64,000 nucleotides of DNA from Oikopleura dioica. Taxonomy: Eukaryota; Animalia; Chordata. Shown here piece after piece: positions 227-42,969 of the stretch. Position 1 is the stretch's first letter; each line of letters starts with the position of its first letter. The notes below the pieces were generated by a model. That model was given only the letters and a program-made list of their open reading frames with translations, ran no database searches and was not told the origin of the DNA. Where the stretch lies: assembly GCA_907165135.1 (NCBI GenBank), contig OU015566.1, forward strand, positions 9,672,001 through 9,736,000, given 5' to 3'. Position numbers and translations under genes: made by a program.

Positions 227-3200
227 TTACTAAATATGAGCAGTTATTTAAACGCAGTCATAATAAAACAGAATGGTTTAAATGGAAAATAATTGCTAAC
301 ACACCTGACTAAAAGGAGGATATTGTCCGTGTTGTTGCTGCGGAGGTGCTCCCATGCCTGGTGGGGCTCCTCCTTGTGGTGGTGCTCCGGGATATCCACC
401 TGAAAAGAAAGGATTATTATCGAATACAAATATAGGAGCAAGTTAAATTATCGTGATAAATTTAACTCACGGTGTGGTCGCATACCCCCTGGGTACTGAG
501 GAGGATACTGGCCATATTGAGGATAACCTCTAGGCGGGTATCCTTGGTATCCAGGATGTCCAGGAGGGTGTCCATAGCCAGGCGGCATTCCAGGTCGAGG
601 TGGATAACCACCTGAGCCGGGGTGTCCGTGTGGTGGGTAACCTTTCATTCGGGCTTTGACTGGGTCATTTTCTTATTTTTTCTAAAAGTTTTTCACTAAA
701 GCCGTGCCTTGCGGAGGATATCCAGGATGTCCACTTGGGTAGCCATAAGGGTAGCCTGGTTTCTGCGCCATGCCAGGGTGCATTCCTTGAGGCGCGTGAG
801 GGTTGTATCCTGCTGGTGGTGCACCTTGGGGACTTTGGCCAGGATGGGGTTGAGACTGCCCTTGCATTGCTGGCCCTCCTGGGCTTTGCATCATCGATGG
901 GTGTCCTTGACCTAAAAAGACATCTTAGCTAGATAAAGACTAATAAGGATCTACCCGGAGAAGACTGTTGAGGTGACTGATGCGGGATATTCGGCGACTG
1001 AGCATGTGGTGCTTGAGGCGTTTGCGGATTCACCGATGGGCTCGCATGTGTTGAATCTGGTCTGGGAGGAGGATTAGGCGTCGAAGGCTGTTTCTGGGGT
1101 GATATCTAATACTCGGAATATAAAAGAACTTAAACTGGCGCCAACTACGACCTGTTGTTGCGCCTGCGGTTGAGAGCTGTGTAGATGGTGAGGCTGGTTC
1201 ATGGCGTGTGGAGGGTAGCCTGGCGCCTGGCTACCTGGATACGGCTGGCTGGCTGGCCCACCAGGATAACCGGGGCCATAGCCTGGATGCTATAAAATGC
1301 TAAATAAACTTATAAAAATAACGATTTACCTGTGAGTAAGGAAATCTGTGTGCAGGATTCTGAGCGGCTTGAGGATTAGGTGCTCCAGGTTGCCCAGGCC
1401 CATTCCCATGAAAACCAGGATAACCGGGATGTGGCTGACTTTGTGGCGTAGCTGCTGGATTCTGTTGCGTTGGCATCGCACTGTTTTGAGCTGCAGATGG
1501 AGACTGTTGAATTGGTGTTTGTTGTTTGGGCGGAGGTTGTTGTTGCTGCTGTGGTTGTTGAGCTTGAGAAGACGCCGAAGGAGCGGGACTTTGAGCTGGC
1601 TGAGACTGCGCCTGTTCTTGTGGAGTTTTTGGAGGCTCTTCGGTAATCGACTGGGGAGGTTCGGTTTCGGAACTTGGCTTTGGTGAGACTCTGGCTTCGC
1701 TTTCGGAGTTGACCGCTTGAGGAGGGTTATTTCCAGGAGTTGGCGGATTATCTGGTTGATTTTCCGTAGGAGCGGGAGATTTTACAGCGGATTCAGTCGG
1801 AACGGGAGTTGAGACTGGAGGAATTTGTGTCTGTGATGGCTGATCATTTTCGGTTTCTTGTGTTGACGCAGGAGTTGCTGGCTTTGGTGGGTGACCGTTT
1901 GGAAGCCCGTTCGGTAGTCCTGGGTGCTGCTGTATGCCTGTATGAGCTTGTGGAATGGGTGGTTGGGCCATTCTCGGGCCCTCAGGTCTAATCTGAGACA
2001 GAGTGGCTATTTTGGACAAAAAATAGGGGTCTATCCATCCAAATTCCATCCAAAAAATTTCTAACCGGGTCTATCCATCCAAAATCCAATCCAATCCAAT
2101 TTTCGCCCAATTCCCAACTAAAATCCAATTCCAAGTTCTTCCGAAATTCCAACTTTTCCCAATTCCCAATATGCCCCGATTCCATTGGATTTCCAATATT
2201 TTCCAGCTAGCAAATTCAAAAAAAAACAAACAAACAATACTTATTCTTCAAAGTTTATTTCTGTAGATCCAAGGGCAATGTCTAGGATTGTGCTGGCAGC
2301 AAGTTTGTGGCGTCGAATAGATCGCATCAATGTCGTGAAACTGAAGGCTCGCTCCAGGCTTGAACTTGAGACGGAAGAGTGATGAAGCTAAGAAATGCTT
2401 TATTTTTGAACTCAAAAAAACCGAACCATTAATCCGATTCTGCTCAATCTTGGCAAGGTTTCAGCGTATCGCCGCCAGAACTCTCCAACAATATCATCTT
2501 CCGCAACCTTCTTCATTGCGCAATACTTCTTGTCTAATTTCAAATAAAGTAGATTAATGATGAAAATTACTTACGCGCTTCTATATCAGTATCATTTACT
2601 TCGTCGTACTGAGCAATCTCTTCTTCGATCTTGGAACGGATTTCTTTTGGCTTTCCTAGTCCGCGGCGGTGACTAAGTGGGCCAACAGCGTTATTTTGGC
2701 TGTCACATTGAACATTATTAACGCCAGCTTCAAGGAGCTGTAACAACTGTTCATCTGTCAGCTCGTCGTCTTCCATTGTTCGATCAACCTCTGTGATCCA
2801 GTTCTTCGCTTTTTCGAGCCAATCCTTGGTTCCGTCGACGAGTACTTTCTGAATTATTTTTTGGCATGAAGATAAATACATACCATTATTTTGGAGATGA
2901 AGGGGACTCGGGAATCTTTCATTTTGGCGACGACTGGATGAAAATTCATCGCTATCGATGTAGAGTCGGGTGCCAGGTAAATGCTTGCCAAGTCTTTGTT
3001 GGTAAAACGAAGGGGTACTTGACATGGGACATCGTTTCCATTCATATCAATCCGCTTTTTTGTAACCTGTTCCACCACACTGATGAGCACAGCCTTCGCA
3101 AATCTGGATTCCTCGGTCCGACTGATTGTGATTCGATTGACGCACTCAATCATTATTCGTTCGATTTGCTTGTAGTACGCTGATCCGCAGGCAAGCGAGT

Positions 3201-5924
3201 CAGACTCGAGAATATTGATACTGCGATGAATTTCGATAAGAAGAGGGTTGATTGATCGCGCAAACTGCAGATCTGGGACTGGACACTCAGCGAGAAGATG
3301 GCGTTGAGGGTGGTTGATAGAAAAGAGGTTGTTTAGGCTATCTTCGCTCAAAAGGAGACGCTGAACTCCATAGATTAATTTCCGGAAGCGCGTGGAGCCG
3401 GAAATTCGATCGATGGCCTTCCCTTTCTCCTTTCTGTTGAGGAATGCATCCGTCTTTTCTTCAACAAGTCGTTTGACTTGATCGTCTTCAAGAATTTCAG
3501 TACTCGCTTTTATTTTTGCATTATAAAACTCTTTTATAAGCAAGCGATTAGTCACTTCTTGAGAAATCAAAAACGCATTGATTGACTTGTATCCGACACC
3601 AGCCGGAAGATCACTCGCCGATACTGTAGCTTCACACTTGTCGATGAATTTTTCAAGTGATTCGTACTTCTTATCCTTCGGTCCACCTGGTCTGAGATTT
3701 TGTTCGCACGCTCTCTTAAGGTTGCAACACATTGAATGACTTCCGCAAATGCTACGGTTGATCGTAAAATGCTCGGGCACGGACTCTGCTGCCTGATCGC
3801 TCACAATGCAGACCAAGTTTTTCTCTATCGCATCGGTAAGGTTGTATTCTTCAAATATCTGCTTCAGTTTTTCTATGGTGTGATCCGCAGTTGAGTCCGG
3901 CATCGGAACATAACCGATCAAACAGTTCCAAAATCCGTTTTTGCAGCGAATATTGACCTCAACCCCGAGTATCTTCCAGAGCGTATTTTCTTTAGTTTTC
4001 ACGTATTTGTGGTCTTTAAAGGATATTAAATTGTTAATAAGACAAATTATTCAAAAATTTTTAAAGAAACTTTGAAATCCTTATCCTAGAGAAATTGACA
4101 GGCGGCCCTTTTTTGCCATTTCCGGAAGAATCTGTTGAAGGCGCTCCCGAATTTTCTTTGCCTCTTCTTTCATGTATATTTTGATGGCATCCTTCGAAAG
4201 GCAAAGTTGATTGATGAGCATCTGGCTAAAGGATACATTTTTGAGAAGGCAGCGCATCAGGGCCTTGACAGAGTCATGTGACCAAAACCGGAAGCTTGTT
4301 CCGGTATCGCGCATGACTTGCAGAACTTTCTTCTGGACATCAACTCTGTGGTCCTTGGTGTTATTCAGAAGCGCGAGTACTCTCTGCTCATCTGGTGCTT
4401 GCGCGTGGCGATCCACAATCGGTTCGAGAGTCTTTTTATAGACATCTGTATTTTGATCGTATGTATGGAATGGCTTAAGGTTTTTTAAGAATTTTTACAA
4501 AATGCAAATTTTACCTCTCCTCTGCATTTTTTGCACTTAGCTCCATCTATTCTTGCGCAGCGCAAGTAGCAAGTCGGAAATCCCTCGAAATAGTACTCTT
4601 CAAATTCAAGGTTGAGCTCTCGAATCTTGTCTTGTAGTTTTGTAGGGGTCCATTTCTTCCATTCACCAGTCGGTTGCTCACTTTTTTCATCAGCAGTAAT
4701 TTCCGCTTTCTTTCTATCAACCTCTTCTTTTCGTTTATCCTTGTCTTTTTCGTCACTCGCCACATAAATGCATCTCTTGGAACGCTTGGCAGGTGGACTC
4801 ATCCCTTCTGAAAAAAGGTTGACTAGTAAAAGAAAAGAAAATGCCATTTAAATCGCAGTAAAACTCTCTAATGATCAGTATTTATCCGTCTGAGAAAGGT
4901 AGACTGCGCGTGATGAGTGTAGGTTGAGAACAAACCTGATTGGTCGATCATTTTTTCGCAATTTTTTCTCGGATCCAATCTTGCCAACAACTGCCAATTC
5001 CCCAAGAAGATCCAATTTTCCAATGTCGCCAATCCCCAATTTCCCCCAATTACCCAATTTTACCCAATAAAATCCGATACCCTGGCCATCCAAATTCCAT
5101 CCAAACCTTATTGGATTGGATCCAATCCAATTCCAACTAACCCCCAAGTCCAAAATAGCCACCCTGATCTGAGAAGTCGGTTGAGGGGTTGGTGCTCCAG
5201 GCTGAGGCATGCCGTGTTGCTGAGAGTGCTGCTCAGTCGGCGCAGTTGCTCCTGGAGCGGTGGGATGTGCTGGTCCTCCAGCTGGACCGGGTGTCGGACC
5301 AAGTCCCATTCCAGAACCCTGTTTATCCGCAGCAGTAGCGAGATAGACGAGATTCTTGTGCAGCTTGTTTTGATATTGGACGCAATCTTGGACCATTCCT
5401 AAAAGAATTTCACGAGTTAGAAACCGCGTCTGTAATTACGCTAAAATAAAGGGAATTTTTGAAAATTGACGACATTTAGGCATAAATACGCCCGTTTGAC
5501 GTGACAAATTCCACCGAATGTTGTCTAGATTGTATGAATCAATTGAAATGGAATAAATTAAAGAAAGTGAATAGCGAATTCACAGTTGGGCTCACCCTTC
5601 GACTGGTAGTTGATTATACATTCGATCAAGTGCGTATTTTCGTCGAGAATAAATTGAATCTGTGAGCGGGACGGTGGAGCTGCATTTGGAGGCATTCCAT
5701 GACCATTATGACCGGCACCCGGTGGTGGTGGCACAGGGCCGCGCAAGTCGCCTCGAACCTGAATTCGTAATTTTTAATACGTTTTTAGATTGACAAGATT
5801 ATATTCAGCGTATCAATTACAGTAATCAACGACTAGAAAATTGTTGAGATTACGGTACCTTCCGCAAATTCGCAACTAATTTTGGCAAGTTTAGCGTTAT
5901 GGAAGAGTATTTTTGCTTATCCAT
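227..5924 (-). CDS. SS18: SS18/SYT-family (SSXT domain, QPGY-rich) BAF-complex subunit; multi-exon; one exon interrupted by a hAT element
   Basis: Spliced N-terminus QIQFILDENTHLIECIINYQSKG|MVQDCVQYQNKLHKNLVYLATAAD matches the SSXT motif. Long Q/P/G/Y-rich exons follow, with phase-compatible junctions (5859-5924, 5596-5758, 5163-5398, then 1992 downward). The first exon and terminal stop are hand-predicted. Confidence 0.88.
642..707 (-). other. Non-canonical GC-AG intron with end-pairing stem (SS18)
   Basis: caa g|GCAC-GGCTTT...AAAGCC-cgaatgAAAG|gt; phase 1 joins PPQ-G-YPP. Confidence 0.7.
2241..4802 (-). CDS. hAT-family transposase, about 6 exons, apparently intact
   Basis: N-terminal Cys/His BED-like finger, SISLD (D1, across a splice), CIVSDQA (D2), CGSH (CxxH), STRF, and a C-terminal FW..LP.LS / SSSLERAFS dimerization motif. 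Phase-compatible introns. Confidence 0.88.
4014..4085 (-). other. Non-canonical GA-AG intron with stem (inside hAT transposase)
   Basis: cta g|GAT-AAGGAT...ATCCTT-tAAAG|ac; splicing rebuilds the catalytic SISLD. Confidence 0.7.
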
Positions 5925-6256
5925 TTCCAAATTCAACTGAGAAAGAGAACAGAAAAATGAAGGATTTTTATTGAAAATCTAGAAAAAATAATTTCTAGAT
6001 AAATTCGATGAACTACAGAGCTCCACGAGCGATCCGAGCATGAAAAAGACTCGAGGTTATGAACAAACCTGGCTACCAAAAGACATTCTAGTGAATTCTT
6101 TCTAGAGTTTTCCTTTTTCCCTTCTTTTTTCTTTTCACTCTAAATTGCTGGTGCGAGTTGAATTATTCTCCAACGCTGATTGGCTCGTCTCGGCCATTCA
6201 TTTTGACCGACCCGTTCTCACGGCGCTTGAAAATGGAAATCGACTATTTCACCGAC

Positions 6257-7050
6257 GGGTAGGCTTCACTTTGACAAGAGCTTCATTTCGACAGAGCTTC
6301 ACTTGGACAAAAGCGTCACTTTGACAACATTTTAAAAGGGTCATTTTTATGAATTTGATAAAAAATTCTCATAAAGAAAGTAACAGTTTTCATAAAATTG
6401 ACAAGTTTTTTACATACAGTTAATAATGGAATTTCTGGACATTTTTTGTCCCCCATTTTTCCCGAAAATGTCCAGAAATTCGATACAGAGCCTTCAGAAA
6501 AATGTCCCAACAAAATTGCTTAAAAATTTTTCGAGACGGAAAAATTGACGATTTTTTTCAAAAAAATTACTAAAGAACAATAAAAGAAACGCGCTGTAGC
6601 CGTCTTTCTTGTTATATTATAAGATTTTCGAAGAATAATAGCTCTTTATAGATGAAATTGGCATAAATAACTCAAGTTTGACTAAAAATTTAGATGTCGA
6701 AGACATCTGTTGAGAAAAAATGTCCAGAAATTTGATACCCCCTCTCTTTGAATTTGTCCCAAGAAAACCCCTTAAAATCCGAAAAATGTCCAGAAATTTG
6801 ATGTCCAGAAATTCCATAAAAAACTGTAAATATCCTATAAAATAAATTTATTGGTGAAAAATTTGTCTTTGTTTACTTTTAGATCAAAGAAAACATCTGA
6901 TAGTGTCTATTATTCTTAAAATTTGGCCATTATTAGTTATAATTAATTACGTTATTAATAAATAATCGTTTTTCAAAAGTTGTCCAAGTGAAGCTCTTGT
7001 CCAAGTGAAGCTCTGTCGAAATGAAGCTCTTGTCAAAGTGAAGCCTACCC
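6257..7050. mobile_element. Mutator/foldback-like non-autonomous MITE (794 bp)
   Basis: ~75-bp TIRs starting GGGTAGGCTTCACTTTGACAAGAGC, built of ~17-bp sub-repeats. Perfect 10-bp TSD TTTCACCGAC (6247-6256, 7051-7060). Confidence 0.9.
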
Positions 7051-8675: not shown

Positions 8676-8785
8676 GAATAAACCGACTGTTCTTTTTTGT
8701 ACAATTTCGTTTTATTTATTGCACAGATGAACGAGCACACGAAAAAGGGTGATAAACGTAGTTATGAATTAAATAGCCGTTGTAG

Positions 8786-14713: not shown

Positions 14714-17700
14714 ATGAAGACTCATACTTTTTTATTTTATGTGCTTATAGCAAATTCACGTAAGTTTGAACCTGAGTGACTGTTTCCCCCATTTTGTCAG
14801 ACGGAAGAATTTTGTCATGGAAAATATCTTTACGATAATATTAAGTAATATTGGCGCAAAAACCGAAAAAAGCGAAGAAGGAAGTAAATGAAAGACTTCT
14901 TCGAAAATGGGCGAAAGCAAAGGCTGCTCGCCAAGCTACAGGAGCTTCAACTACAGCTACAACGATGTCGGACTCTAGTTCAACGGAAAACAATCAAACG
15001 AGTACAGCCGCAGCATCAACAACAGCAACAACGACATCGACAATGACGACAAGAATAACAACTGAAAGAGCTCAAACAACAATAAAACCAACGACAACAG
15101 AAAGAGCATCAACGACATCATACCAAAGAGTTGTCAGAAAATCGACCGCAGCGGCTCAAACATTGAATGGTATAATAATGTCCCGATTCAACAACCCCAT
15201 CGCCAAATATCTCCAAAAGCACCTTCGTCAAACCGGCACTGTGACCCCTCAAACCACCCTAAGTCCTCCCAAAACACAAATTTTAACAGCTGAGTACGAC
15301 GGATTCCCACCCGTCTTTCTCAAATCCTCTTCAACCCCTAGTTTTCATTCCGTTGACATTTCCTCGCTCGACATGAGCGCCTATCCACCTCAGAAAGTCC
15401 TCTTTTCCGAGAAAAACTCGACCAACAAATTCGAAATCAAGCTTTGGGATACCATTCCTTTCAATACGGAACGCGAAGTCCCAGATGGTAAAAAAACATA
15501 AATGTTCTTCTAACTGTCCAGTAATCAGCTTCGGAGCGGCGGAAAATGAGCCGGAAAATCGGACATAGACCCTAACGTGTGTTCCGCGTCTTTTTCTAAT
15601 GCTCATCTGATTACTGATGAATCGTAATTTTTAATAATTGAATGTTTGGTGAATCTTCTTACACGTCTATTATCTAAATCAGGGTTCCAATTTTGGCCGA
15701 AAAAATTTTGGAGTGGAGTGGAGAGATGAGTGGATAGCCCAAAAAATTTTTTGAGCGGAGTGGAGCGGTGAGTGGATGCCCCAAAAAAATGGTTGAGCGA
15801 GTGGAGTGGGTGAGCGGAGTGGATTTTGAGTGGATTTTGAGCGGATTTTTAGGGAAGTTTGAGCGATTAAAAAAAATTTTTAAATCGCTGGGGGGTGAAA
15901 GGTAGAGAAAGAGGTGGCGTAAAGAAGAGAGGTTGAAAAAGGTCGGGCCCCCACGAGCAGACAGAAACCGAAGTCTTCTTTGCACGCCGTGAGCAAGCCT
16001 TTCATTTTTCTGATCATCAAACTTTTATGAAGAAGTTGGTCCTAAATTGAAGGTTGATCCTGATATTATATCATTGATTTCTTCTCTTGATTATCTCCTG
16101 AGAGAATTCGATTCAAATAGACAAAACTCGGTCTCCAATCAGAATACGAGAAAAGGGGCGCTAAAGACAAAAATCCACTCCATCCGCTCAAAATCCACTC
16201 CATCCACTCAAAATCCACTCCAAAGTAGATTTTACAGGTTGGAGTGGAGTGGAGCGAATGAGTGGATACTAAAAATATAGGCTGAGCGAGTGGAGTGGAG
16301 TGGATCCACTCCGCTCACGCTCCACTCCACTCCGCTCAAAATCCACTCCATCGCTCAGCAAAATTGGAACCCTGATCTAAATAAGGCCTGTCTCACAAGC
16401 TGTCTCATAAAAAATAACAGCTCCTTATTGTTATTTAGAAGAGACGATTACATCTTGACATGGGAGTATTGAGTGATAATAATATTCCTCAAGACGTGTA
16501 ATAATCTAAACTTATTTTGTCCAATTTTGAGATCGATGTTTTACTTTGAAAACTGAAGCTTTTACGCTGAGTTTTCAAGTCTTAATGTCAATGGGTCCGG
16601 GAATAAAAGCTTTATTTAGATGGATTGGTTTGCTACGCTTGCCAGAATGCCCTAACTCATGAAGAATGCAATGTGAATAAGATCAAATGTAACACAAGCC
16701 AAAAGGAACGGTGTCTCTATTTTCATACCATAATTGGTAACGCAAATGTTTTTAAAAAACAATAAATCTTGTCCTAAATTGGAATTATAAGCCGCATAAT
16801 AACAGACTCGTAGCTGATTTTGTTTTGGTAAATTTATTCAGGAGGAGAACTGAATTAATTTATGATAAATAGATCTAGGGAGCTCATATGATAATAATAC
16901 TCAATTTGTATTGTTTTATTCTTAAGTTATTATCAATCATACCTCCTTCGGAGTACCGTCGACAAAGTTTTCTGTAATGTAATCACTAATGTCTGTCAAT
17001 CGGACATCTTCCTACGTCATCATGTGAACCGCACACTTTTTGCACCCTTGAAAGGCTTCATGCATGATTGAGATTCGAAGTGGTGGCCCTGGACAACCCG
17101 ATTTGATCAGCAAAGGATGCAAACAGGTACCTTTTGATTAAAAGTCTTCTCGTGAACGAGCTCTTGAAGCCACGTTATTCAAGCTGCGTTCATCTAAAAT
17201 TTTAAAGTTTATATAAGAGTCCTTCTAAATCTCGATCATTTTCAGGTGGTCGCATGCATCAATAATAACAAGAATCCAAACAGCCACAATTGCTGCTGTG
17301 AGGGACGGGTTTTAAACAAAATATGAACAGATAAAACGTGAAAAACGTAACTCAATAATAATACTACCACCATCTTGCATAACTACGAAATTAACCCGCC
17401 AAAGACAAACGAATGCAATCGTAACGGCACGACATGCGCCAATTCCAATCTCAGTCCGATCACGCTGAAAAATGGCCGAACAGTGACCCCAAGGTTCAAA
17501 TCTTTTGCGTCGAAGACCGCGGCGAAGTGGGGTCCTTGGTTAAATTGGTCAGGATGTTCTCAATTGTGCGGGGGAGGAATCAGAAGACGGCGACGAATGG
17601 GTTACGGCCCTGGTGCAAACTTCGAAGTAAGTGAGAAAAAAATCTCGGCAGATCGGACACTTATTCAGTTATCTAATTATACGAACTCAGAAGCATATTT

Positions 17701-20700
17701 CTCACGCGTGAAATTAACCGACTTTTAAATAGCCAGAGTAGGCCTTCTCTCTGACTCGTGCTTGTCCTCAGAATATGCTAATTTTTCTTAATGGTTTGAA
17801 TTGATCACTTGGTTATTAACCCATTTTTCAGGAAGAAGTATGTAACGACACACCATGCAAAGATGGCGAGGACCCTCACGATATCATGGCATCCCTGCAA
17901 AACAAAGTCCTTAACTTTTTACGTTCCGACGCTGGCGGCAGAAATGTCCGACAATGGGAAACATGGGAAAGTTGGGGTCCATGTGGCACAAAATGTGGCC
18001 GAGCATTCCGAGAACGAACCCGGACTTGCCCAGAAGAAGACGCCTGTCCCGGAAGCGACTCACAGCGGGTCGCTTGTACTGCCATCTGGGGATGCAACAA
18101 TAACAATAGAATAAGCAAACTCAAAGAGCTCCAATCTCAATTTTCTCCTTGGACGTCGTGGCTTCCATGCTCGAAATCATGCGGAATCGGAACCGAAACG
18201 CGAACAAGAACATGCATTGCTGCGAGATGCAATGGATTCTTGGAGCAAACGCGAAATTGTAACTCACAACCTTGTCAAGGCCCTCAAGTCCATCTTAAAA
18301 CCGTCGCGGGAGAGTGGAGCACATGGAATGCCTGGAGCGAATGCTCTGTTTCCTGCAATGGCGGTAGCCACACTCGAACACGAAAATGCATAGGCGGTGA
18401 GTGCGTGGGAGAGTCGACCGAAGAATTGCCTTGTGGAGAAGAGCCGTGTGCTCGATGGAGCGAGTGGTCAAGTTGGACAGATTGCTCAAAAGACTGCGAT
18501 GGAGGATTTACTAAAAGAGAACGTCTGTGTTCAGGAGAAGGTAGCTGCGAAGGAACAGATGTAAGCGAGAAGTCATGCAATACTCACTCTTGTCCAGTGC
18601 TTGAAAATTGGTCGGAATGGTCTGAGTGCTCTCAGCTAGGGATTCTGAATAATCATATCTATAGTTTTGAATATTTCAATATTTTATGATTTAATATCAT
18701 TATATTTGATGATATATTGGTATTTTTTTAGCTAATATGGGATTATACTTAGATTAGATAATCGAATAAATTATAAATCCAACGCTCAGTCTTGTGGCTC
18801 TGGTGGAAGTTCATCGCGCAAAAGATCGTGTTCTTCCGGAGAAGAAGATGACTGCACTGGTAGTTTTTCGGAAACAAAGAATTGTAACCTCGGTCCATGC
18901 GCTCATTACTCGCCGTGGTCCGTTTGGTCTGAGTGCGACTCCCTTTGCGGTGGTGGAATCACGAAGCAGGCTCGAACGTGTGTCGGCATTGGCGCGTGTG
19001 AAGGACCTGATATAAAAGAGCAAAGTTGTAATGAAGATCCTTGCTTGGGCTGGGCCAGTTGGTCTAGTTGGACGAGTTGCTCGGAGCCATGCGGTGTGGA
19101 AGGAACAAGAGATAGGCAAAGAGAATGTGAAGGACAGGAGTTTAAATAACTACTTGTGTAGAGAGAATAATTATTTTTATTGTTTTTTACGTGTTTGGTC
19201 CATTTATTAAAAGCATGAAATAATTTTGTAAGAAATTGACCTAACTAGGTATAGCGTCAGCATATGGCGAGGATATATATTTCGAACTCAAATAAGGATT
19301 ACCGGAGCTCTGTAAAGGAGAATCATCGGAAAACGAAAGCTGCTTTGTCGGCACTTGTGCTGAATGGTCAGACTGGCTCGATTGGGGCTCATGTTCTTCA
19401 CTTTGCGACGGCGGTAAAAGAGAACGGTCTCGCATCTGCACTGGTATCGGGGAGTGCGAAGGAAGCGCAACCAACACTGACGACTGCAACATTGAACGCT
19501 GCGCAATTTGGTCAGAGTGGAGCGATTACGGACCTTGCTCAACTACGTGCGGCATCGGAGAACGAGTTCGGGAGCGTTCATGTGATGGAATCGGTAGCTG
19601 CTCTGGCAATGATACTCAAATCAGTGACTGCTCTTACGGCGAGTGTGCTGACTGGTCGGAATGGGCCGCTTGGACAGAATGTTCAAAATCATGTGGAGAT
19701 GGACTCAAGTCTCGATCGAGAGATTGTTTTGGTCTCGGAGATTGCAAAGGCAATAATCAGGATACAGAAGTGTGCAATATGGGACGATGTGCATTTTGGG
19801 CTGATTGGCAAGAGTGGGGACAATGTTCTCAAGAATGTGACATAGGAAAACGAGCAAGAATCAGATCATGTGACGGAATCGGCGAGTGCCATGGAGAAGC
19901 ATCCGAAAATGAAAACTGCAATACTGGTCCATGCGCATATTGGGACCATTGGGGCTCTTGGAGTGCTTGTAGTGCGTCTTGTGGAGACGGTCTTCGGCAA
20001 CGAAAGAGAGACTGCTTAGGCGTTGGAGAATGTGAAGGATCTACGTCTGACTTGGAGGCTTGTGACATTGGCGCGTGCGCAGATTGGGCGGAATGGAACA
20101 CGTGGGGAAGATGTTCAGCTTCCTGCGGTGGTGGACAAAGAGTGCGGGAAAGAAATTGTATTGGACTTGGAGAATGCAAGACTGGAGATCAACGACAACA
20201 AGGAATTTGCTCAATTCAGGAACGGTTTTGAAACGTTCGCATCTAAAACTACTATGAATTATTTAAACTATAAATTATTTCCATGAAGTACGTCAAATTG
20301 AAAGAGGTCAATTAATTTAAAATGTCTAGCCATAAGATTTATTTTCCCTCAAACCATCATGAAAGTCATGCGAAGTTTATGGGTTGTGGGCTGAATGGAG
20401 TGCTTGCAGCGCGTCATGTTCGACTCCGGACACCTTTGCCACACAGTCTCGCTTACGTCCATGTCTAGTGGAAGATAAGTGTCTTCCACAAGAACTTCTG
20501 GAATCGCAAAAGTGTCCAGGGAGTCCTCCTTGTCCCACCTGGTCGATTTGGTCTGACTGGTCTCAGTGCTCAGAAACATGCGGAATCGGACAGCGCAGCA
20601 AGGCCCGGGAGTGTCTCTATGGCGACGATTGTGAAGGAGATATCGCTGAGTCGGAATCGTGCTCGGACGGAGACTGTCCTACTTGGACAGATTGGCTAGA

Positions 20701-30324: not shown

Positions 30325-31878
30325 ATGAGCCAGAGAATCGACTACTGGACAAATGAAAACGGACATAGGCTAAGATGGAGAGAGTGGCCGGTAGATAGGC
30401 CGAAAGCAGTGGTGTTCATTTCTCATACCTACGGAAAGTATCAGATAGAAGAAAAGACTTTTTTGAATAGTTCTGAACGCAATATATTATTTCAAATAAT
30501 TTATTTATCAAATTTTCTATACCGCCCTCTCAATATTTAAGTATTTTGAAACGGATCCTTTGTTTTATATTCAACAGGGTTACGGTTTATTTCAGCAGAA
30601 AACCGTATTTCGAATGTCCTTTCAGAAAGGGTCATTTTTGAATAAGTAATGGATCTACCACTACTTCTATAATCATTTATAAATATCTAACCCTAGCAAG
30701 TCCCTCTACTCATTTATCACCAGATATCATTACTTTTTAATGGCATCATACTTAGCATGACATGCTACACCCCCAGTAGACTGTCTACTGTTAATCACGT
30801 TTGATACTCTGTAAAAGGACTGCATTCTGGCGTGTTTCAAGATTGTGCCTTGGAGATCAACAAGCACAATATTGGAGTTTATGCACACGATCATATGTAC
30901 CATGGAGAATCGGAGCCAGCAACTCCATGTTCTCCGAACAGATGTCAATTTCATTGCTTCGACGATCCAGTTCGAGATATAGCTGAACGCTTGAGGTAAA
31001 AAGTTATTTCATGAGCGTCAATAAACAATCATTTTTTAGAATGCTGCGGCATGAAAATCCCAAAATTCCAGTATTCATCTGGGGCCATGGAATCGGCGCG
31101 GTTTTCGCCATTCGAGTCGCAGTAGAACATGAAAATCATACTGATGGGTTAATCTTAGAAAGTCCCTTTATCAACCCTAGTGAGACAGCGATTGGCTGGC
31201 ATAAGACTATAGGAGGTTTGAAATCATGGAAGAGTATGAATCTAAACTTTCTAAGCTCAATTTCTCAGCTATCTTGTTCCCGACTTGAAAATTCCTGTCA
31301 TCGAGCCTTCCTTCTATACTTCAGGTACAGTTTCTCCATTGACACTACTCACCAAATCTTTTCTAGAGCAGAAAACCCTGAGCAAACTTCTCGCCGATCC
31401 TTTATGCTCCCTTAGTCTTGGGATGTCCACAAATCTTATCACACTTCTTAGCAAAGAACTGAAGAAACTTGAAGCGACCATTGCATTATTGGAAATTCCA
31501 TTTTGGTAAAATAAAAATTTTTCTAACAGACATTTTTATGCTCTATTTTTAGTGCATTTCTTGGAGAAAAGGACCAGATTATCAGCCTGTTTTCTGCCTC
31601 GCGAATCGAGAAAATGTCGCCAGCAAAAGACAAGAAAATCATTAGCTATCCACCCGGAAAACATTGTCTTCACCTTGAGCAAGCAACCATCAGATCTTCA
31701 TTTATCATTGATATCATAAAGGTATTTTGTTCTATTTCGACCCAGACAAATTTGACTATTTCAGTGGATAGAAGCGCGATCTCCTGCCGAAGCTCCACCA
31801 CTACCGCCAAAGGAAAGAAAATCCAGGCAAAAGAAGGCTCCAAGACACTCTTCAAGCAATCGATCCCATCATCGCTAG
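30325..31878 (+). CDS. Monoacylglycerol-lipase-like alpha/beta hydrolase, nucleophile Ser absent
   Basis: VVFISHTYG|LHSG, VYAHDHMYHGES, VFIWGHGIGA, LILESP, FLGEKD and GKHCLH follow the MGLL/lysophospholipase layout. Confidence 0.8.
30434..30817 (+). other. Non-canonical GA-AG intron with stem (lipase-like gene)
   Basis: tac g|GAAA-GTATCA...TGATAC-tctgtaAAAG|ga; yields HTYGLHSG. Confidence 0.75.
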
Positions 31879-33460
31879 AATTACCTTATTTACTTCTTCA
31901 TCTGCTTATAAATATACACTACAGTTTCATCACTATTTCTTATCAATATATTTCCAGCAAAGAGTCTTACCAGGAGGATTATCAAGGAGGCTTGAAAATC
32001 GTCAATTGACACTCCCCTTCAATAAAAATAAGGGTGTTTAGTGCCTTGTCTAAAATTTAACTTCGAAAAAAAGAGATAATCAACAAATCTTTATCAAAGA
32101 AATTGTGCAAATAGACAAATGCATACAGTGAGAATAGAACGACTGAAAGGCCATTTTAGGACACCAAGAACCCTTTTAAACCTGGAATTTATCTTACTAC
32201 GCCTCTTCTACTGAATAAAAGAGCCATTCTGTGGCCATAATACTTTTTGAATAAGAAATCAAGCCATTTGTTCCCGAACAAAGCCTCCTGTCACGCATCA
32301 ACGAGTGAAAGACCCTATTCTACGATTCTTCTTTGAATACCAAGAATTTCGAGATTTTTTTCTAGACTTGTCGATTTACAGTTTTCGAAGTTGAGACAAA
32401 GTTAGATTTAGTTGTGCGAAATAAATTTAATTACAAGGTAAAGAGAAAAATTGATTTTGAGAAAATGGGGGAATTATTTGATAGTTTTTCAATGGCATCT
32501 ACGTACTGGGACCCTAATTAACAATGGCTGTACAAGTCGACGTACAGACTTATTGGCGATAATTGGGCAAACTGTATCAAATGAGTAGGGATTCCCTTGC
32601 ACTTCCCTGCTAGACCGCTGCTGGATCAAATTGACACTAATTTAATCAAGAAGCTAATCAACTAACGGTAGAAACAGGCAAATCCGCTTGATACAGTTTG
32701 CCAAATTTTCGCTAATAAGGCCGCACGTCGGCTTGCGCAATCAGCCTAAGTGGGAATTAATCAAATCCCGCAGGTAGAATCGAATCGATCGCCGGTGCAA
32801 GATATGCACAGAATAAACGACGAGCAGTAAATCGATCGAGGGTAGTGGTCCCTTGAGTCACCAGAATAGGAATCGCGCGCGCTGATTCGCCGAGAGCGCA
32901 TGCCGCCTACAAGGGCACAGACTCGGTGCCAGATTCTGGAGAAGACGAGAGATCGGCAAGAGAATCTAATTTTCTACTTTTTCCTCTATTTTTGAAAGAA
33001 TCTATCTGTCAATTTGATCTAGCGAAATCACCTTTCTAGAACAAGCCATTCGAGAAAACTTTTTATAGATACGTTTATTATCATTAATAATAACGAGCAA
33101 TTTGTCGTTAAAATATTGATTAAATCCCCTGATTTTGATTTCCTTACACAAAGAAAGCTTTGGGTCTTGAATATTTTTCATGGAAAAAATATTTTTTCCG
33201 GTTCATTGACCCAGTCATTGATTTTTAACGACCTTGAGATTTTCGCCAACCCCAGCGCGTTCCTAGTCTACTCGCCCCATTTTCTTTTATTTTGTATCAG
33301 AGAGTAAAGAGCTCTTCTTGTTCAAATACCAGCCCGGTGGAAATTTACGTCCATGGCAAATATTTAACCCGATTTGCGCCCGGCAAAACGTTAAAATTTG
33401 TGCTTTTCTCTTCATTCCGACGTATTTTTCTCAACGAAGAGCATTTTCAGATAAGTCGAA

Positions 33461-34767
33461 ATGGGTAGCGATTCTAAGCAGGCCGGTCCACCAAAGTTCC
33501 AGTTCTACAACTCCGAGACTGGCGAGCTCTTGGGACGAAATGGCGCTTCTTGGCGTAAGTACTCTCATATTTGTACCTTAGTAGCTTTTGACTCGAAGAA
33601 AGGATCTAAATGTCCGTTTCGGCAATTTTTCTGCGTAAATCGACAAAATGAGGTTGAGTTGAAATATAACCGGCGAAAATTGCATTTATTAGTCCTAAAT
33701 AGATTATTATTGACGGTTTTTGCTGGTATATTTTCATCTCCCAACCCTCTTTTCTCCATTTACAAAGCCAAGAGAAATTACCAAAATGGATCTCCGTCCT
33801 TATTTTGAGCGCTACAGTATCCTACTTACCCTAGTTTCGTTTACTTATTATTTTCTTTAGTCAAGATCACCGTTTTCTACATCGCCTACTTCACCTTCCT
33901 CGCCGGTCTTTTCATGGCTTCCATCTCCGTCATGAAGACCACCGTCAACGACGACAAGCCACGACTTCAGACCCGTCTCCAGATCCCTGGCCTCCACGCT
34001 CTCCCCAAGCTCAGCCCAATGAACGACGCCCAGTCCGCTCGTCTCTCCGACAACGGCGGCGTTGCCATCAAGTACGACCCCAACAACGCTGATGACTACT
34101 CCATCTACACCGGCATCCTCGACGAGATCAAGGCCGAGTATTCCGGCGAAGCTGACACTCCATTCGACGTCAACTCTCTTGGCGCATGCGGAAGCGGCAA
34201 CTACGGTTATGATACCGCCTCTCCTTGCGTCTGGATCCGACTCAACAAGGTAACATATCCATTCTCGACCCGCCCTCACCTCCATCTTTCAGGTCATCGA
34301 CTGGACCCCCGTCGGCTACTTCGCCCCCACCGAAGCGCAAGGTTTCACCGCCGCTTCCCTCAACAGCCGAATGGAGAAGGATGCCGTCTACGTCCGATGC
34401 GAATCCAAAGAAGTCGAATCTGAGGACCGAGACGTCGCCAGCTTCGAATACTTTGGTGGTACTGATGGCAACCTCGAGTCCAAATACTACCCCTTTACTG
34501 GCAAGAAGGCCCAGCCCAACTACGAACAGCCAATTGTCGCCGTCAGGATCAATGGCCTCAAAGTAAGATACAATTTGAAAATTCTGTTACTAACTTTACG
34601 TTCAGCCTGGAGTTAACACTCGAATCTACTGCCGAGCTTTCGCCAAGAACATCCCCATTGATGACCGAGACAACCTTGGATCCATCACCTTCGAGGTAAA
34701 TCCCCTTACTTTCCTTTCCAAGATGCTAACTTTCACTTTTTAGGTCACTCAGGGCACCGCCGAGTAA
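33461..34767 (+). CDS. ATP1B: Na+/K+-ATPase beta subunit
   Basis: FYNSETGELLGRNGASW|LKITVFYIAYFTFLAGLF transmembrane segment, CVWIRLNK|VIDWTP, YYPFTGKKAQPNYEQPIVAV, CRAFAKNI. Five exons, all GT-AG, with strong C-ending codon bias. Confidence 0.95.
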
Positions 34768-37290: not shown

Positions 37291-37936
37291 AATGCGAACA
37301 CAAATCGAGTGAAAATGAGTGCGATTTTCATCGTTATTTTTCCTCCATACGAGTGAGCTGGAGCATTTTTTCGCGCGAAATTTTTATATCACTCGAGGGA
37401 TGTCTAGGACGCCGCCAGGATGGTCATACAGTAGAGCCATTTTGATAAATCGTACTATTAGCATAATGTTATTTTTTATGACACAAGCCTCAATAAGATT
37501 ATAATGAATTTGGTGCAAGGTTAACGTTTTTTCAAGGCAACCGGGGATGAGACATTTTTTTCTCATACAATATTAAAGTAACCAAAAGGGACCATCAAAA
37601 CATTTTTGTGTCATAGTCTAAGACTTAACGATTACGTCTTACTGACGGTTACCGTTAGATTATAACAGTAAAAATTTTTAACGGGCGGCTTTGAAAAGAC
37701 GACTTAGTATTAGTCTATTACTAATACTATTAGTCTAATAGAGGAAAATCAAAAGTCAGTCGAAGTTTTACCTGCATCACTATCAAATAGATTCTCAATA
37801 AATTTGACGTCAGAAAGCCTTGGAACTCAATTTCCACAGAAATAATCTTTCCATTCGCGTTTGTTCATTATGTCTCCATTTGCGTTGATAATGGATTGTC
37901 TCAGGAAAAATTATTTGACTAACTCTATTCTTTCAA

Positions 37937-40318
37937 ATGCGCTTCTATAAAAGCGCTTCGCTGGAATCTCAAATTCAATTTATCATAAAAATGATGGGAA
38001 AAGATTTTTTGGAGGAAAAGCGCAATGCATTTCCGCGATTTTTCTTCCTCGATGACGGTGATCTTTCTGAGCTTTTTGAGAGCAAAGATGATTTCGATGC
38101 AGTTCAGCCTTTTTTCGAGAAGCTTTTCGATGGCGTTTCTTCAGTAGAGCTCGACGCAGAAAAGAAGAATATTGTTGCGATGAAGTCGAAGCTCAACGAA
38201 CGACTTGAGCTTGCTGAACTAGTCTCTATCGCTCAGTCGCAAGAAAGATGGCTGTCGAAGTTCGAGGAGTCCACGAAAAAATCTGTTTCCAACGCGATTC
38301 TTCATGCTTACGAGACTTATGAGAAAAGCGCTGATAGAATCGAGTGGATCAAAAGCAATCCTGCCCAAGCATCAATTGTTGCGACGCATTTGAAGCATAC
38401 AGAAGCAGTTGAAAAAGCCATCATGGCTTCTGGAAATCTTAGCACTGTGTTGGAAGATATTGAAAAGCAATTAGAAGCACTGACAAAGGAGGTTTTGAAA
38501 GATTTGGACCAGCGGGAAAGGTGCTTGATGGAAAACATGATTATTAACCAGGTTTGGCTGATGTAGAAAATAAGGCAAGTAAGTCAAATTCAGGTTCATG
38601 ACCGGGAAATACTGAAACAAATCATCGCTGGGACGAAAACTTGGGAATCAACTCTTCGTTTTTACCTCGAAAATGGTCAGGTCATTGTCAAAATGAATGA
38701 TTCTCAAAACGAGTATGGAAACGAATACCTCGGAAACAAGTCTCAGCTTGTCATTACTCCTCTGACAGACATTGCATACAGTTCGATTCTGACCGCAAAG
38801 GAGAACTTTCTTTGTTCTGCTCCTCAAGGACCGGCTGGAACGGGAAAAACGGAAACGACTAAAGATCTCGCTAGAGCGCTGGGAAAGAATTGCGTCGTTA
38901 TCAATTCTTCCGACCAATTGACGGAGAAGGAGACAGCGGAAATTTTCAAGGGATGTCTTACAAGTGGATCATGGGTCTGTTTCGATGAATTTAATCGAAT
39001 CACCGCGGATGTTTTGGAAAAAATTGGAGAACAACTTCGAGCTATTCAAAAGCATAGGGAGGAGAAGAAGGGGACGATTGAGGACTTCTGCGGTTCGAAA
39101 AATCTAAAGGAATGGGTAAATTATTTATACGCTTTAGGATCAATCAATTAATGATTTTTATGAAAAAAAAATAATCGTTCCTTTCGCCAATTTACCCACC
39201 ACACAAGCTCCGCGAAGAAAGCTTTGTCGCGATCACAATGAATCCAGGCTACGATGGACGAACTGAACTACCGGAAAATCTGAAGACATTGTTCCAATCA
39301 ATTTCAATGACAGTTCCTGACCGAGGAGTGATTTCGGAAATAAAACTGTATTCGGCCGGAATTCAAACAGCAAATCAACTCGGAGATAAAGTCGCTTTGT
39401 TCCACAAGCTGTGCGAGGAGAAGCTAAGCAAACAGGTTTCTTTTCTTCTCGGTGTTTGATCATAACAGTTTTTGAAGGCGCATTATGATTTTGGACTTCG
39501 AGCTATTCTGAAATCTGTATCAAGCGCAAAAGCTCTCAAACTACTCTTTCCCGCCGAAAAAGAAATCGATCTTGTGTGCGATGCTCTCCGAACTCAACAT
39601 TTCGGAAAGCTAACTGAAGAAGATATCTCGGTTTTCGAGCAAGTCATGGAAGAAGTTTTTCCTGGCTACCAATTGTTGAAGGAAAACAACGAGGAATTCA
39701 AACGTATCGCCACTGAAATAATCAAGTCTCTTGAGTTGAAAGTATGGAAATTCATTAATTCAACATTATATATTTTTTTCCAGGCAACTGAAAAATTCCT
39801 CACTCGTCTGACTCTCGCCTTCAAGATCATGAGAAATCGTCATGGCTTGCTCATTCTGGGACAAGCTCGCACGGGAAAGTCAACGTTTTTGGAAGTCCTT
39901 CAAAAAACTCTTTCCAAGCTAAATGATGATGATCAAACACAAGATGGCGAACCTGTTCTGGCGGTTGATACCGAAACCATTTGCATCGAGAAGCTGAGTT
40001 TAGATGAACTCTATGGATCATTCGATTCAACAACGAAAAAATGGAGGGATGGCAAAATCACCAAGGTTTTCCGAAAGTTCGCTTCGGCAGCTGACAATCG
40101 CCAAAAATGGATCATCTTCAGCGGTCGAATTGATCCCGTTTGGGTAGAGCAACTAAACTCTGTTCTCGACGATAACAAAAAAGCTCTGCCTTGAGAATGG
40201 AGAAATCATTCAAGCAAGCAAGAACATGCGCTTCATTTTCGAAACCAGCGATTGCAACAAAGCGACACCTGCATTCATCTCCAGATCTGGCGTAATTCTT
40301 CTCAGCGAAAAATTTTAA
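37937..40318 (+). CDS. Truncated dynein heavy-chain-like protein (linker end + AAA1 + AAA2 only)
   Basis: LEEKRNAFPRFFFL, GPAGTGKTET, CFDEFNRI, MNPGYDGRTELPENLK, HYDFGLR, GQARTGKS, WIIFSGRIDPVWVEQLNSVLDDNKK, then LCLENGE..ISRSG and a stop at 40316-40318 (needs a 1-nt correction in the A6 run at 40177-40182). Confidence 0.85.
39110..39207 (+). other. Non-canonical GA-AG intron with 9-bp perfect stem (dynein-like gene)
   Basis: aag|GAAT-GGGTAAATT...AATTTACCC-accacacAAG|ctc; joins to LREESFVAITMNPGY. Confidence 0.8.
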
Positions 40319-40743
40319 CGCCTTTTTTCCTGCAAAATCATCTGACAGAATAATAAATCATCAAATTTGACTAAAAGTTTGGAGTAAAAAGTTTCTACTA
40401 GAAACGTTTTCGGAAAGAATGACCTTGTAATAATGCATCAGTATTAAAAGCATGCTGTTGTTTATCAGCAAATAGACGCCCGCGATCCAAAAAAATCAAA
40501 TTATTGATAAACCATTACTGGAACGGTTCAAGTCTGGAATCAGACTTGTATAATAATTCTAGTGCTTCGCTGAAATTGCCCGAGGCTGCTCAGAAGAGGC
40601 AGGCCCGTCTGACGCTTGAAATTGTGTCAGATCGCAGCACCACCTCCAACAAAAAAAGTTCCGCTTTTTGTACTTTCTGACGTTGAGAGATTATCGGCAA
40701 CATCCGAAAAAACAGGAAAATAGAGAGGAAAAGAATTGGAAGA

Positions 40744-42969
40744 ATGATTGGGGCTTTGGCCTTCTGCTTGTTGGGGGCCGATGGAGTTAATGGATTCAGA
40801 GGTGCTTAGCGTGAAAGAGCTTGTGCATAAAATAGACATTCAATATAAAGATCAAGGAACTGATAACGTAACCTTGCAAATCTTAGGAATTTTATGTTAG
40901 AATAAAGTCGTAAATAATATCTTCTGAAAGTTCTATTTTATAGAAGATCTACTTTAGCAGTAGTTTTTGTTGACGATTTAAAATATTTCACAACTCATAG
41001 TTATTAAAAGAGTGTATGAAAGTATTCCTTTTATAACTATTAGAGTAGTGTTTTTGTTCCTTATTCAATGTGATTTATACATTATTAATTAAATACTTTA
41101 CAAAAGTTGTTTTGAAAAAAATTTCTTACAGTTATTTTCAGTAAGACGTGATCTGTCAGCAGGATGTGGCCAAAAAGTCATGTGAGTATTCAAACCATAA
41201 CAATTGCTATTTAAAGCTCGCCCGAATTTGGCCTTTCTAGAGGTTGGCCAATCGTGTTTGTGCACGGGTGGTGGCGGAGTTGTACCGCCCGAGCGACGCG
41301 TATCTTTGAACGTCGAAATTGAAATGTAAAATTATTTAGGCTCACGCATGTCGATACCGCCGTCCTTAACTCGCCACGTTATCCTGGTTCTTTTATTGAA
41401 CAAGTAATTGATTAACACGTGCTTCAAGAACTTAGCCTTTGTTTTAAGAACCAATGTTTATGGGAAGTGCGATCATTCGATCCTCAAGCTCGCCTCAAAA
41501 TCGTGTTCGATGACTGGGCAATGCCTTTATCCCCAAGTGGCGATTGCGTTGCTAACTATCTTGAGATCCAGGAGCATCAAACCTTTGGCGTGTCTCAGAG
41601 TGTAAAACTCTGCGGCCAAAATCCGGGCTTTTACGTGTCTAACAATGACAAAATTACTCTCGTGCTTAGAAGCTCCGCCCAAATACAAGGTGTGTTATGT
41701 AACAAAGAATGAAATATCTAGGGCAGTTTATGAGAATGTAGAATATTTTACATAACAGTCTTCAATAATAATTTATTCAATAATCGTCAATGAGTAAAAG
41801 ATGTTTCAATTTTCCGCTCCGAATTCGACAATAAATTTTATAATGATTATTCCGAGTGATATAATTATTATACCGTATGTATTCAAATTTGAATAACCGA
41901 TACACAAGAATACTGCGAGACGAAAATTACCATTTCACTGAAAATATTCAATGACTCTCGACGATGCTTTGCACTATTTTCTGCTGACAGGGAAATAAAC
42001 GGTATTTTAGGAGATAAGAGCTTCTCGTTGCGCGTTGGTTTGACAACCGAGCCCTCAAGAACACTTGCTCAGGACGGGAGCTTTGTCGTCAACGGAGAAA
42101 GCCCACTTCCTCGTCCGACGCAGCCGCCGATGCCGATGCCACAGCAGCCGATTCAGCCAAGGCAGCAAATGCCATTTGGAAATCAGCTTGAGTTACAAAA
42201 ATTATATGAGCTTATCAGTTACTTTCAAGCTCTTATTTTCTAACTCTCAATAAGCCACCTAGCATTAACCTTTTCGCTCAACAACCAGCCCCCGTGGCCC
42301 CTCGAGGCATCGAAATGAAATCAGCTGGGCTTCCCCCACCTTCGCAGTACCAACCTCCGCAGCAGCCACCAGCTCAGCCAGCTTATGGCCAAGTTCCTCC
42401 AAGTTCAAATTACTATGCTTACGGCGGAGCTCCAAATGTGTATCAGCAGCCGATCGGAAGTGATTACGGGTATTACTACGATGATTACTACGGAGATGGA
42501 GAGGAGATAAGCGCTGGAAATAAGGCTGTAGCGGTTTTGTTTACGATCACTGTGGTTTTATGTTTCCTAGCAGTCGGATTCTACTTCTATCAAGAATGGC
42601 AAAAGAAGAATAATCCACCAGGTAAGAAAACCGAAAGAGAAAAGAGCCATAAATTGATTGAAGACAACGAAGACCCAGGAGCACCGCCAAGAAAAGCAAC
42701 TCTTCGGGGACACCTAAAGAACCTCGACGAGTTCAAAAAGCAACTTGCTGAGCGAATGGCAGATAGAACCGCCGGTGTTCGCGAGCAAATCAAGACCAGA
42801 ACGATCAAGGCGAACGAAAAACTCAAAGTGAAAGCGGCCGAAGTGAAAACAAGACTTTCCCGCAGAGCATCTAAACATGGAGATGATTCCATCCCCCAAC
42901 AAGGTTTGTTTTGATTTGATTGGAAAAGAAAGTAAGTCTGTTTCAGCTCAAAACAATCCAGCTAATTGA
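40744..42969 (+). CDS. Single-pass membrane protein with CUB domain and Pro/Gln-rich stalk
   Basis: Signal-like MIGALAFCLLGA, CUB-like LNSPRYPG..NQCLWEV..C..NYLEI..KLCG..LVLRS, transmembrane AVAVLFTITVVLCFLAVGFYFY, and a basic cytosolic tail. Confidence 0.75.
42187..42254 (+). other. Apparent CT-AG intron with stem (CUB gene)
   Basis: cag|CTT-GAGTTAcAAAA...TTTTcTAACTC-tcaatAAG|cca (10/11 bp). Confidence 0.6.

Follow-up and report, generated by a model that had tools for sequence, protein, structure and literature searches.

Analysis of a 64-kb window of gene-dense larvacean DNA (contig OU015566.1, positions 9,672,001 to 9,736,000; "the window" denotes this whole stretch) revealed a class of 14 introns that were drawn without a GT donor and whose two ends pair with each other. 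The paired ends form a short, perfect helix that starts at +3 to +6 and ends 5 to 10 nt before the acceptor, with arms that differ from intron to intron. Most introns of the window are 38 to 48 nt long, start with GT, and have a T-rich end (TTTAG or TTCAG). Splicing of two members of the class is supported by RNA, and the pairing is conserved or compensated in three orthologs. We favor, with a confidence somewhat above even, the reading that the non-GT introns are a U2-type spliceosomal, stem-assisted class beside the ordinary GT-AG introns of 40 to 48 nt, in which a selectively kept helix would bridge weak intron ends.

The intron set (N01 to N14) was re-derived from reading frames and domain continuity, with flanking strings as anchors for the coordinates. 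All 14 introns listed by the original prediction were recovered, and its tallies of donors (GA in seven, GG in two, GC in two, and apparent CT in three) and of AAG acceptors (11 of 14) were reproduced exactly. In the following list, positions are those of the window in transcript orientation, the number in parentheses after the 5' arm is its start within the intron, the tail is the distance from the 3' arm to the intron end, and P is the probability of the stem in the predicted fold ensemble.

N01, 707-642, minus strand: GC-AG intron of 66 nt in an SS18-like gene; stem GGCTTT (+5)/AAAGCC, tail 10 nt, P = 0.87; frame continuous as YPPQ/GYPPHG (slash, junction).
N02, 4085-4014, minus strand: GA-AG intron of 72 nt in a hAT transposase gene; stem AAGGAT (+4)/ATCCTT, tail 5 nt, weak in the ensemble (P = 0.06); the sole stop-free join.
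N03, 10451-10213, minus strand: GC-AG intron of 239 nt in a LIM-homeobox gene; stem CCGTTCATT (+5)/AATGAACGG, tail 8 nt.
N04, 16706-17054, plus strand: GA-AG intron of 349 nt in a TSP1-repeat/vWA gene; stem GGTG (+5)/CACC, tail 8 nt.
N05, 17303-17404, plus strand: GG-AG intron of 102 nt in the same TSP1-repeat/vWA gene; stem CGGGTT (+4)/AACCCG, tail 6 nt, P = 0.98.
N06, 18636-18789, plus strand: apparent CT-AG intron of 154 nt in the TSP1-repeat/vWA gene; stem GGATT (+5)/AATCC, tail 9 nt; TSP1 motif continuous as WSECSQ/SCGSGG, with CTCAG at both junctions.
N07, 19133-19296, plus strand: GA-AG intron of 164 nt in the TSP1-repeat/vWA gene; stem GAGTT (+6)/AACTC, tail 7 nt, P = 0.90.
N08, 20220-20365, plus strand: GA-AG intron of 146 nt in the TSP1-repeat/vWA gene; stem GGTTT (+5)/AAACC, tail 10 nt, weak in the ensemble (P = 0.03).
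N09, 22376-22469, plus strand: GA..GAG intron of 94 nt in the TSP1-repeat/vWA gene; stem TGTTTG (+4)/CAAACA, tail 8 nt, P = 0.92; in a divergent unspliced contig, the differences are confined to the loop.
N10, 23619-23689, plus strand: apparent CT-AG intron of 71 nt in the TSP1-repeat/vWA gene, with GC..CA and AG..AC as alternative readings; stem CGGTGA (+3)/TCACCG, tail 8 nt, P = 0.97.
N11, 25993-25959, minus strand: GG-AG intron of 35 nt as first drawn.
N12, 30434-30817, plus strand: GA-AG intron of 384 nt in an alpha/beta-hydrolase (MGLL-like) gene; stem AGTATCA (+4)/TGATACT, tail 9 nt, P = 0.98; the join gives ISHTYG/LHSGVF, and the joined protein is open.
N13, 39110-39207, plus strand: GA-AG intron of 98 nt in a degenerate dynein-heavy-chain fragment; stem TGGGTAAATT (+4)/AATTTACCCA, tail 9 nt.
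N14, 42187-42254, plus strand: apparent CT-AG intron of 68 nt in a CUB/transmembrane gene; stem GAGTTA (+4)/TAACTC, tail 8 nt, P = 0.92; CTAAC lies within the 3' arm.

The non-GT introns, which are 66 to 384 nt long (N11 aside), were compared with GT-AG introns of the same window (32 at first and 45 later). Without regard to register, the first 16 nt and the last 22 nt of an intron could form a perfect Watson-Crick helix whose greatest length averaged 6.1 bp in the non-GT set and 4.3 bp in the GT-AG set (Mann-Whitney p = 5e-5). When each 5' end was matched to 3' ends taken from the rest of the non-GT set, the mean was 4.2 bp. Permutation of own-end against cross-paired helices yielded p < 5e-5 for the non-GT introns (at most 1 of 20,000 re-pairings reached the observed total) and p = 0.18 for the GT-AG introns. 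This cross-pairing control excludes shared end composition as the cause of the pairing. The best helix started at +3 to +6 and ended 5 to 10 nt before the acceptor in all non-GT introns, whereas the best helices of the GT-AG introns were scattered.

This interval was then taken as the register, and helices of at least 5 bp were counted. An in-register stem was present in 13 of 14 non-GT introns versus 2 of 45 GT-AG introns (Fisher p = 3.5e-10), and in 10 of 11 non-GT introns after removal of three doubtful ones (N03, N11, and N13). None of the 11 long (at least 66 nt) GT-AG introns contained such a stem, which ties it to donor type and not to length. The TSP1-repeat/vWA gene alone shows the same division: each of its seven non-GT introns has an in-register stem of 4 bp or more, and no such stem exceeds 3 bp in its five GT introns. 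The ensemble probability of the stem was at least 0.85 in 9 of 14 non-GT introns versus 0 to 0.27 in long GT-AG introns. The stems are short and perfect (4 to 10 bp) and sharply limited, extending neither inward nor outward. These results bear out the proposals that non-GT introns have genuine, specific stems in a nearly fixed register, and that arms varying among introns each match their own partner. The original prediction had anticipated that non-GT introns would exceed GT introns in end pairing, and this was the case within the window.

Two GT-AG introns of the window showed structure of their own. A 219-nt intron of the CUB gene (approximately 41686-41904) has an A-rich acceptor (ACACAAG) and a helix GTTAT (+5)/ATAAC with a tail of 11 nt. 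This helix falls just outside the register, so the class may include some GT donors. Intron 1 of the Na/K-ATPase beta gene (33555-33860, 306 nt) folds far more stably than its shuffles (z = -5.9); it contained no long inverted repeat and had no Rfam match.

Examination of the splice sites revealed that the donors of the non-GT introns deviate mainly at +2. The upstream exon ended in AG in 12 of 13 introns, and +1 was G in 10 of 13, or in all 13 when the three CT introns were shifted by one base. With the boundaries as drawn, +3 was A in 8 of 13 and +5 was G in 10 of 13 (the +3, +5, and exon-end counts were made by eye from the table of intron boundaries). In the CT introns (N06, N10, and N14), AG ends both the upstream exon and the intron, and a CT donor is indistinguishable from GC..NA or AG..NN, since the mRNA would be identical in each case; a one-base shift turns the donor of each of the three into GC and puts a G at +5. 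A start of G followed by A, C, or G together with an AG end was readable as drawn in 11 of 14, the three CT cases being ambiguous by one base. The acceptor was always AG, namely, the first AG past the 3' arm. The 3' ends were A-rich (AAAG) without a pyrimidine run, with a pyrimidine fraction of 0.53 versus 0.64 in GT-AG introns (p = 0.012).

The original prediction had proposed that structure replaces the reading of the ends by U1 and U6. This was not borne out, as the exon AG, the +1 G, the +5 G, and the first-AG acceptor are retained. Such features characterize ordinary recognition by the spliceosome, here with tolerance at +2 and without a polypyrimidine tract, and the stem is better taken as an aid that pairs weak sites. 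Retention of the donor consensus, together with an AG that never varies, speaks against a definition of the introns by structure alone, as in Euglena. The prediction had further placed the 3' arm over the 3' tract. An acceptor without a polypyrimidine tract was confirmed, but the arm often overlaps a branch-site-like motif and not a pyrimidine tract. In 8 of 13 non-GT introns, the 3' arm enclosed a heptamer that resembles a branch site, ends in AAC or CAC, and places its A at -10 to -13; the clear branch motifs of the GT-AG introns of the window lay at -11 to -16. Judging from these motifs, the helix probably pairs the segment behind the donor with the branch-site region.

The junctions were assessed at the RNA level with a marine metatranscriptome contig (X1 record 1), which spans 170 nt and has a single mismatch, and with read mapping over positions 17050-23049 of the window. 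The contig joins positions 17300 and 17403, and a shift by two bases converts this junction into the GG..AG intron 17303-17404, which is N05. An in-frame GT located 6 nt downstream of the N05 donor was not used in the RNA. The same contig joins positions 17123 and 17243 across a GT-AG intron. It starts with an 11-nt overhang, AACACAAGCCA, whose single in-frame occurrence in the window is at 16691-16701; the overhang therefore indicates removal of the GA..AG intron 16706-17054 (N04). The species-labelled RNA runs (X5 to X7) gave 0 to 7 reads of 90 to 95% identity, apparently from another lineage, and were uninformative on junctions.

The TSP1-repeat/vWA gene (16.6-24.9 kb) holds 7 of the 14 non-GT introns. 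Its joined coding sequence is open through its seven non-GT and five GT junctions alike, up to approximately 24.59 kb, and the CSxxCGxG and WxxW motifs are regained at each join. A reverse-transcriptase template-switching artifact was considered and rejected because the reading frames and the periodicity of the TSP1 motifs demand the removal of these segments. The vWA-domain exon of this gene (approximately 24520-24590) carries an apparent one-base frameshift (DELTGIAS versus NPIEENLYTAEESSDLAGL in the other frame), which may reflect misassembly, allelic variation, or an unseen intron and is unrelated to the non-GT junctions.

To study the pairing in related genomes, a metagenome contig of a sister lineage (L001) and two O. 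dioica contigs (L002 and L003) were compared with the window. The sister-lineage contig covers N04, the GT-AG intron between N04 and N05, and N05; its exon is 95% identical, and its introns are, by global alignment, approximately 61 to 70% identical. In N05 of the sister lineage, the donor is GA instead of GG, and the stem CGGGTT/AACCCG is changed to CGGGAT/ATCCCG by a compensatory replacement of T-A by A-T. In N04, the 5' arm is changed at three positions to give AAGGGT/ACCCTT (6 bp, +4, tail 5), so that it re-pairs with an overlapping part of a 3' segment that is itself unchanged. The intervening GT-AG intron (t1) lacks a stem in both lineages.

The O. dioica ortholog of the TSP1-repeat/vWA gene has a protein identity of 51 to 93%, varying by part. 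O. dioica is the closest named relative, and this divergence indicates that the window derives from a congener or a deeply diverged lineage and not from the Bergen reference strain. Used as protein queries, exons 19299-20219 and 22470-23618 retrieved no sister-lineage fragments, and exon 22470-23618 matched the O. dioica ortholog. N10 is present there in the same codon (L002, 11683-12200; L003, 1110-1441), with an apparent CT donor, arms CGGTGA/TCACCG, a +3 start, and an 8-nt tail. The intron is 332 nt long versus 71 nt in the window, and the interiors cannot be aligned. The ortholog carries a nested inverted-repeat element with ends TTAACCCTCGCGGGTAAATTGACC and GGTCACTTTACCCGTGAGGGTTAA, and the reference haplotype has more repeats after it. 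The O. dioica gene model P0020 terminates exactly at this intron. The position of N09 is uninterrupted in O. dioica, which indicates that members of the class differ in age. Compensation in N05, re-pairing in N04, and retention of the arms in N10 agree with the proposal that structure rather than sequence is conserved, and N05 supplies a compensatory substitution between lineages of the kind that had been suggested as a check. From these alignments, the pairing is likely kept by selection, though a sample of this size stops short of proof.

Two further observations were made in the contigs compared. All six introns inspected in an O. dioica Kelch-repeat gene on L002 appeared to be canonical GT-AG introns. 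A representative search with the hydrolase exon retrieved only a 32%-identical homolog, on Tara and ENA metagenome contigs (L004, approximately 909-1000), that has a GC-AG intron located one codon from the N12 site; its 5-bp terminal helix CATAG/CTATG (+2, tail 6) is anecdotal only.

Taken together, these data are consistent with the following mechanism. The donor consists of G followed by any base at +2, with the exonic AG/G context and +5 G retained and the first base ambiguous in three cases. A helix of 4 to 10 bp between approximately +4 to +10 and approximately -9 to -16 would loop out the interior of the intron and keep the weak donor adjacent to the branch-site/acceptor region, and the first AG located 5 to 10 nt past the helix would be chosen as the acceptor. 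We infer that the helix helps the weak ends to meet early in spliceosome assembly; it would have to open before the intron pairs with U6 and U2. Selection would maintain the helix, which would not merely be inherited from the origin of the intron, and its source may be the inverted ends of DNA transposons inserted in exons. A more specific version, which we consider less probable than not, is that the 5' arm pairs with the branch-site region of its own intron (A at approximately -11 to -13) and that this bridge replaces the pyrimidine tract and cross-intron bridging by U2AF, thereby freeing position +2. If true, such a bridge would offer a route for exonic transposon insertions to become stable introns.

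Several points weigh against the stem-assisted reading or qualify individual introns. Because a stem over +4 to +10 and over the branch site is expected to face competition from U6 and U2, it could be neutral or even inhibitory. RNA backs 2 of the 14 junctions (N04 and N05), the species-labelled runs being nearly without coverage, and the predicted stem probability is low in 5 of the 14 introns. N03 is ambiguous, with an alternative in-frame GT donor at +6 within its 5' arm, and N13 likewise has an in-frame alternative donor, GTAAAT, at +6 inside its 5' arm. N11 is probably an ordinary GT-AG intron at 25992-25949: both readings are in frame, and the GT reading has a GTTAGT donor and a T-rich acceptor, TTTGTAG. 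The comparative sample comprises three introns. Some conservation between these species is likewise seen at the ends of a canonical intron (t3), which makes the conservation of N10 alone weak evidence.

A DNA transposon found in the window bears on a different explanation of the stems. An autonomous hAT element of 3.2 kb (1999-5166; 1991-5174 with its 8-bp target-site duplication, ATCTGAGA) sits in a coding exon of the conserved SS18-like gene. It has 19-nt inverted repeats with one mismatch and a transposase gene with several introns; a search with a transposase exon had no matches. Read on the strand of the SS18-like gene, a possible GA donor has the inverted repeat starting at its +4 position, and the other repeat is followed 11 nt later by an in-frame AG. 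Precise removal of the element needs AT..AG ends, and the GA..AG option would lose two codons. Because its geometry matches that of the class, birth of such introns from transposons is plausible. The arms might then be passive relics, that is, remnants of the terminal repeats of DNA transposons or miniature inverted-repeat transposable elements (MITEs) inserted in exons, or of inverted-end repair filler, without a role in splicing. The absence of N09 from O. dioica, which makes at least some members lineage specific, fits this explanation as well.

Other properties of the introns fit it poorly, and we consider it rather unlikely. No target-site duplications were found at the non-GT introns, the longest flanking repeats being 2 to 5 nt and of the AG/G type. 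The intron ends carry short arms of 4 to 10 bp that are offset from the splice sites, and no extended inverted repeats were found; the arms are perfect and sharply bounded and do not resemble decayed repeats of 15 to 20 nt. The sum of the 5' offset and the tail is 8 to 14, mostly 11 to 12, where 8 would be expected from hAT. BLAST detected no second copy of any of the introns within the window, although a search of 64 kb has little power. Finally, N05 was compensated, N04 was re-paired, and the arms of N10 stayed intact where divergence erased the interior.

Other repetitive sequences were noted in the window. A 695-bp nonautonomous hAT-like element (15680-16374) has the inverted repeat CAGGGTTCCAATTTTG, the duplication ATCTAAAT, and many internal repeats of the GAGTGGA type; it is missing from the orthologous region of the sister lineage (L001, 886-925) and is therefore a recent insertion. 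A 203-nt foldback element (32533-32735) with 48-nt arms that are 85% complementary lies between the hydrolase and ATPase genes. The dynein heavy chain fragment that contains N13 (37919-40330) covers approximately 750 amino acids from the linker to AAA1, lacks approximately 90 residues of the AAA1 region, and has an A-run frameshift near 40185-40195; these features make a pseudogene or a truncated copy probable. An open frame on the minus strand (47200-47960) contains long tandem repeats of the QPRQGFYY type and probably represents an exon of a repetitive secreted protein.

Removal by a nonspliceosomal pathway of the euglenid kind, in which the helix alone would fix the cut sites at set distances, is very improbable. 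The geometry does resemble the Euglena code 5'-N3-CDG...CH'G-N5-6/R (PMC12501133; PMC4770533), the pyrimidine tract is missing, and three members cannot be read with both a +1 G and a 3' AG. Nevertheless, all members can be read as ending in AG, 10 of 13 start with G, and the other three allow a +1 G after a one-base shift. The exonic AG/G context and +5 G are retained, and a tail of 5 to 10 nt together with a 5' offset of 2 to 5 nt indicates that cutting does not occur at a fixed distance from the helix. In F. borealis, the larvacean U2-type spliceosome was reported to be necessary for all intron classes (PMC13326754). Chance, or an artifact of borders chosen by eye, is scarcely credible even though 12 of the 14 introns are bordered by frame or domain continuity only, N11 is probably miscalled, two introns have GT alternatives, and the register was defined on the same data, since the register-free and cross-pairing tests were both highly significant, both RNA-supported introns are in register, and orthologs from two genomes outside the definition of the pattern also fit.

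Recent Fritillaria work points to U2AF paralogs and small nuclear RNA methylation in the recognition of non-GT introns. If the helix, which marks almost all non-GT introns, is kept or compensated across lineages, it would be a cis-acting part of this recognition in larvaceans. Noncanonical junctions would then become predictable in larvacean annotation, where predictors fail, as in the case of P0020.

G*-AG noncanonical introns of Oikopleura were reportedly described by Denoeud in 2010. Those with an AG/GA-A context were described by Frey and Pucker in 2020 (PMC7072748), and the same introns were named "GV/AG" by Soo et al. in 2026 (PMC13326754). The introns of the window share with these Oikopleura/tunicate introns the termini, the AG before the donor, the +3 A, and an animal group without a minor spliceosome. 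Unlike here, a terminal helix, an A-rich acceptor without a tract, and a larger size are not mentioned as marks of the class in these two papers. A full-text literature search, whose reach did not extend to Denoeud 2010 and Henriet 2019, found no description of terminal helices in Oikopleura-type G*-AG introns. A search of Rfam with the non-GT introns gave no matches.

In Fritillaria borealis, noncanonical splice sites coincide with inverted repeats of nonautonomous transposons, according to two sources (bioRxiv 10.1101/2025.08.15.670264; PMC11282704). As reported there after Henriet 2019, the MITE-derived introns are likewise larvacean and non-GT, have inverted repeats at their ends, and are thought to have been born from transposon insertions neutralized by the spliceosome. 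They are described as mostly AG-AC or AG-AT, with repeats at the splice sites, target-site duplications, and families. In contrast, the introns of the window are G*-AG introns with arms offset by 3 to 4 and 5 to 10 nt, without a duplication or a family, and with all arms different.

Hairpin introner elements of Amoebophrya (PMC7789003) are also noncanonical, with inverted repeats of 8 to 20 nt that form a hairpin joining the exon borders. They differ in forming repeated families with direct repeats of 3 to 5 nt, in a protist apparently without U1 (PMC7789003). Mirtrons were rejected as a comparison, since the stems found here are 4 to 10 bp with large unstructured loops versus a stem of approximately 20 bp that reaches the splice sites.

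Stems in yeast introns reportedly shorten the distance between the 5' splice site and the branch point and improve splicing, a result attributed to Goguel and Rosbash in 1993 and Rogic in 2008. Self-pairing there is likewise said to bring the donor and the branch region together, but the yeast stems, found in long GT-AG introns, reportedly lie between the donor and a point that precedes the branch site, keep no fixed register, and do not reach over that site.

The nonconventional introns of euglenids pair +4 to +6 with -8 to -6 (PMC4770533). These and the "intermediate" introns (PMC4770533; PMC12501133) share with the introns of the window a helix start at +4, an end near the 3' border, the absence of a pyrimidine tract, and pairing that joins the ends, and intermediate forms have GT/GC-AG borders. 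Euglena introns have fixed CAG/CTG arms, a 5- to 6-nt tail, variable borders, and an unknown removal machinery, whereas those of the window have varying, covarying arms, a tail of 5 to 10 nt, and spliceosomal-looking borders. CAG/CTG arms with N3 and N5-6 spacers were not found in the window, where helices start at +3 to +6 and leave tails of 5 to 10 nt, nor were borders without G...AG, as all introns end in AG and 10 of 13 start with G. If the stem-assisted reading is true, it would link animal introns with the structure-dependent introns of euglenids and dinoflagellate parasites.

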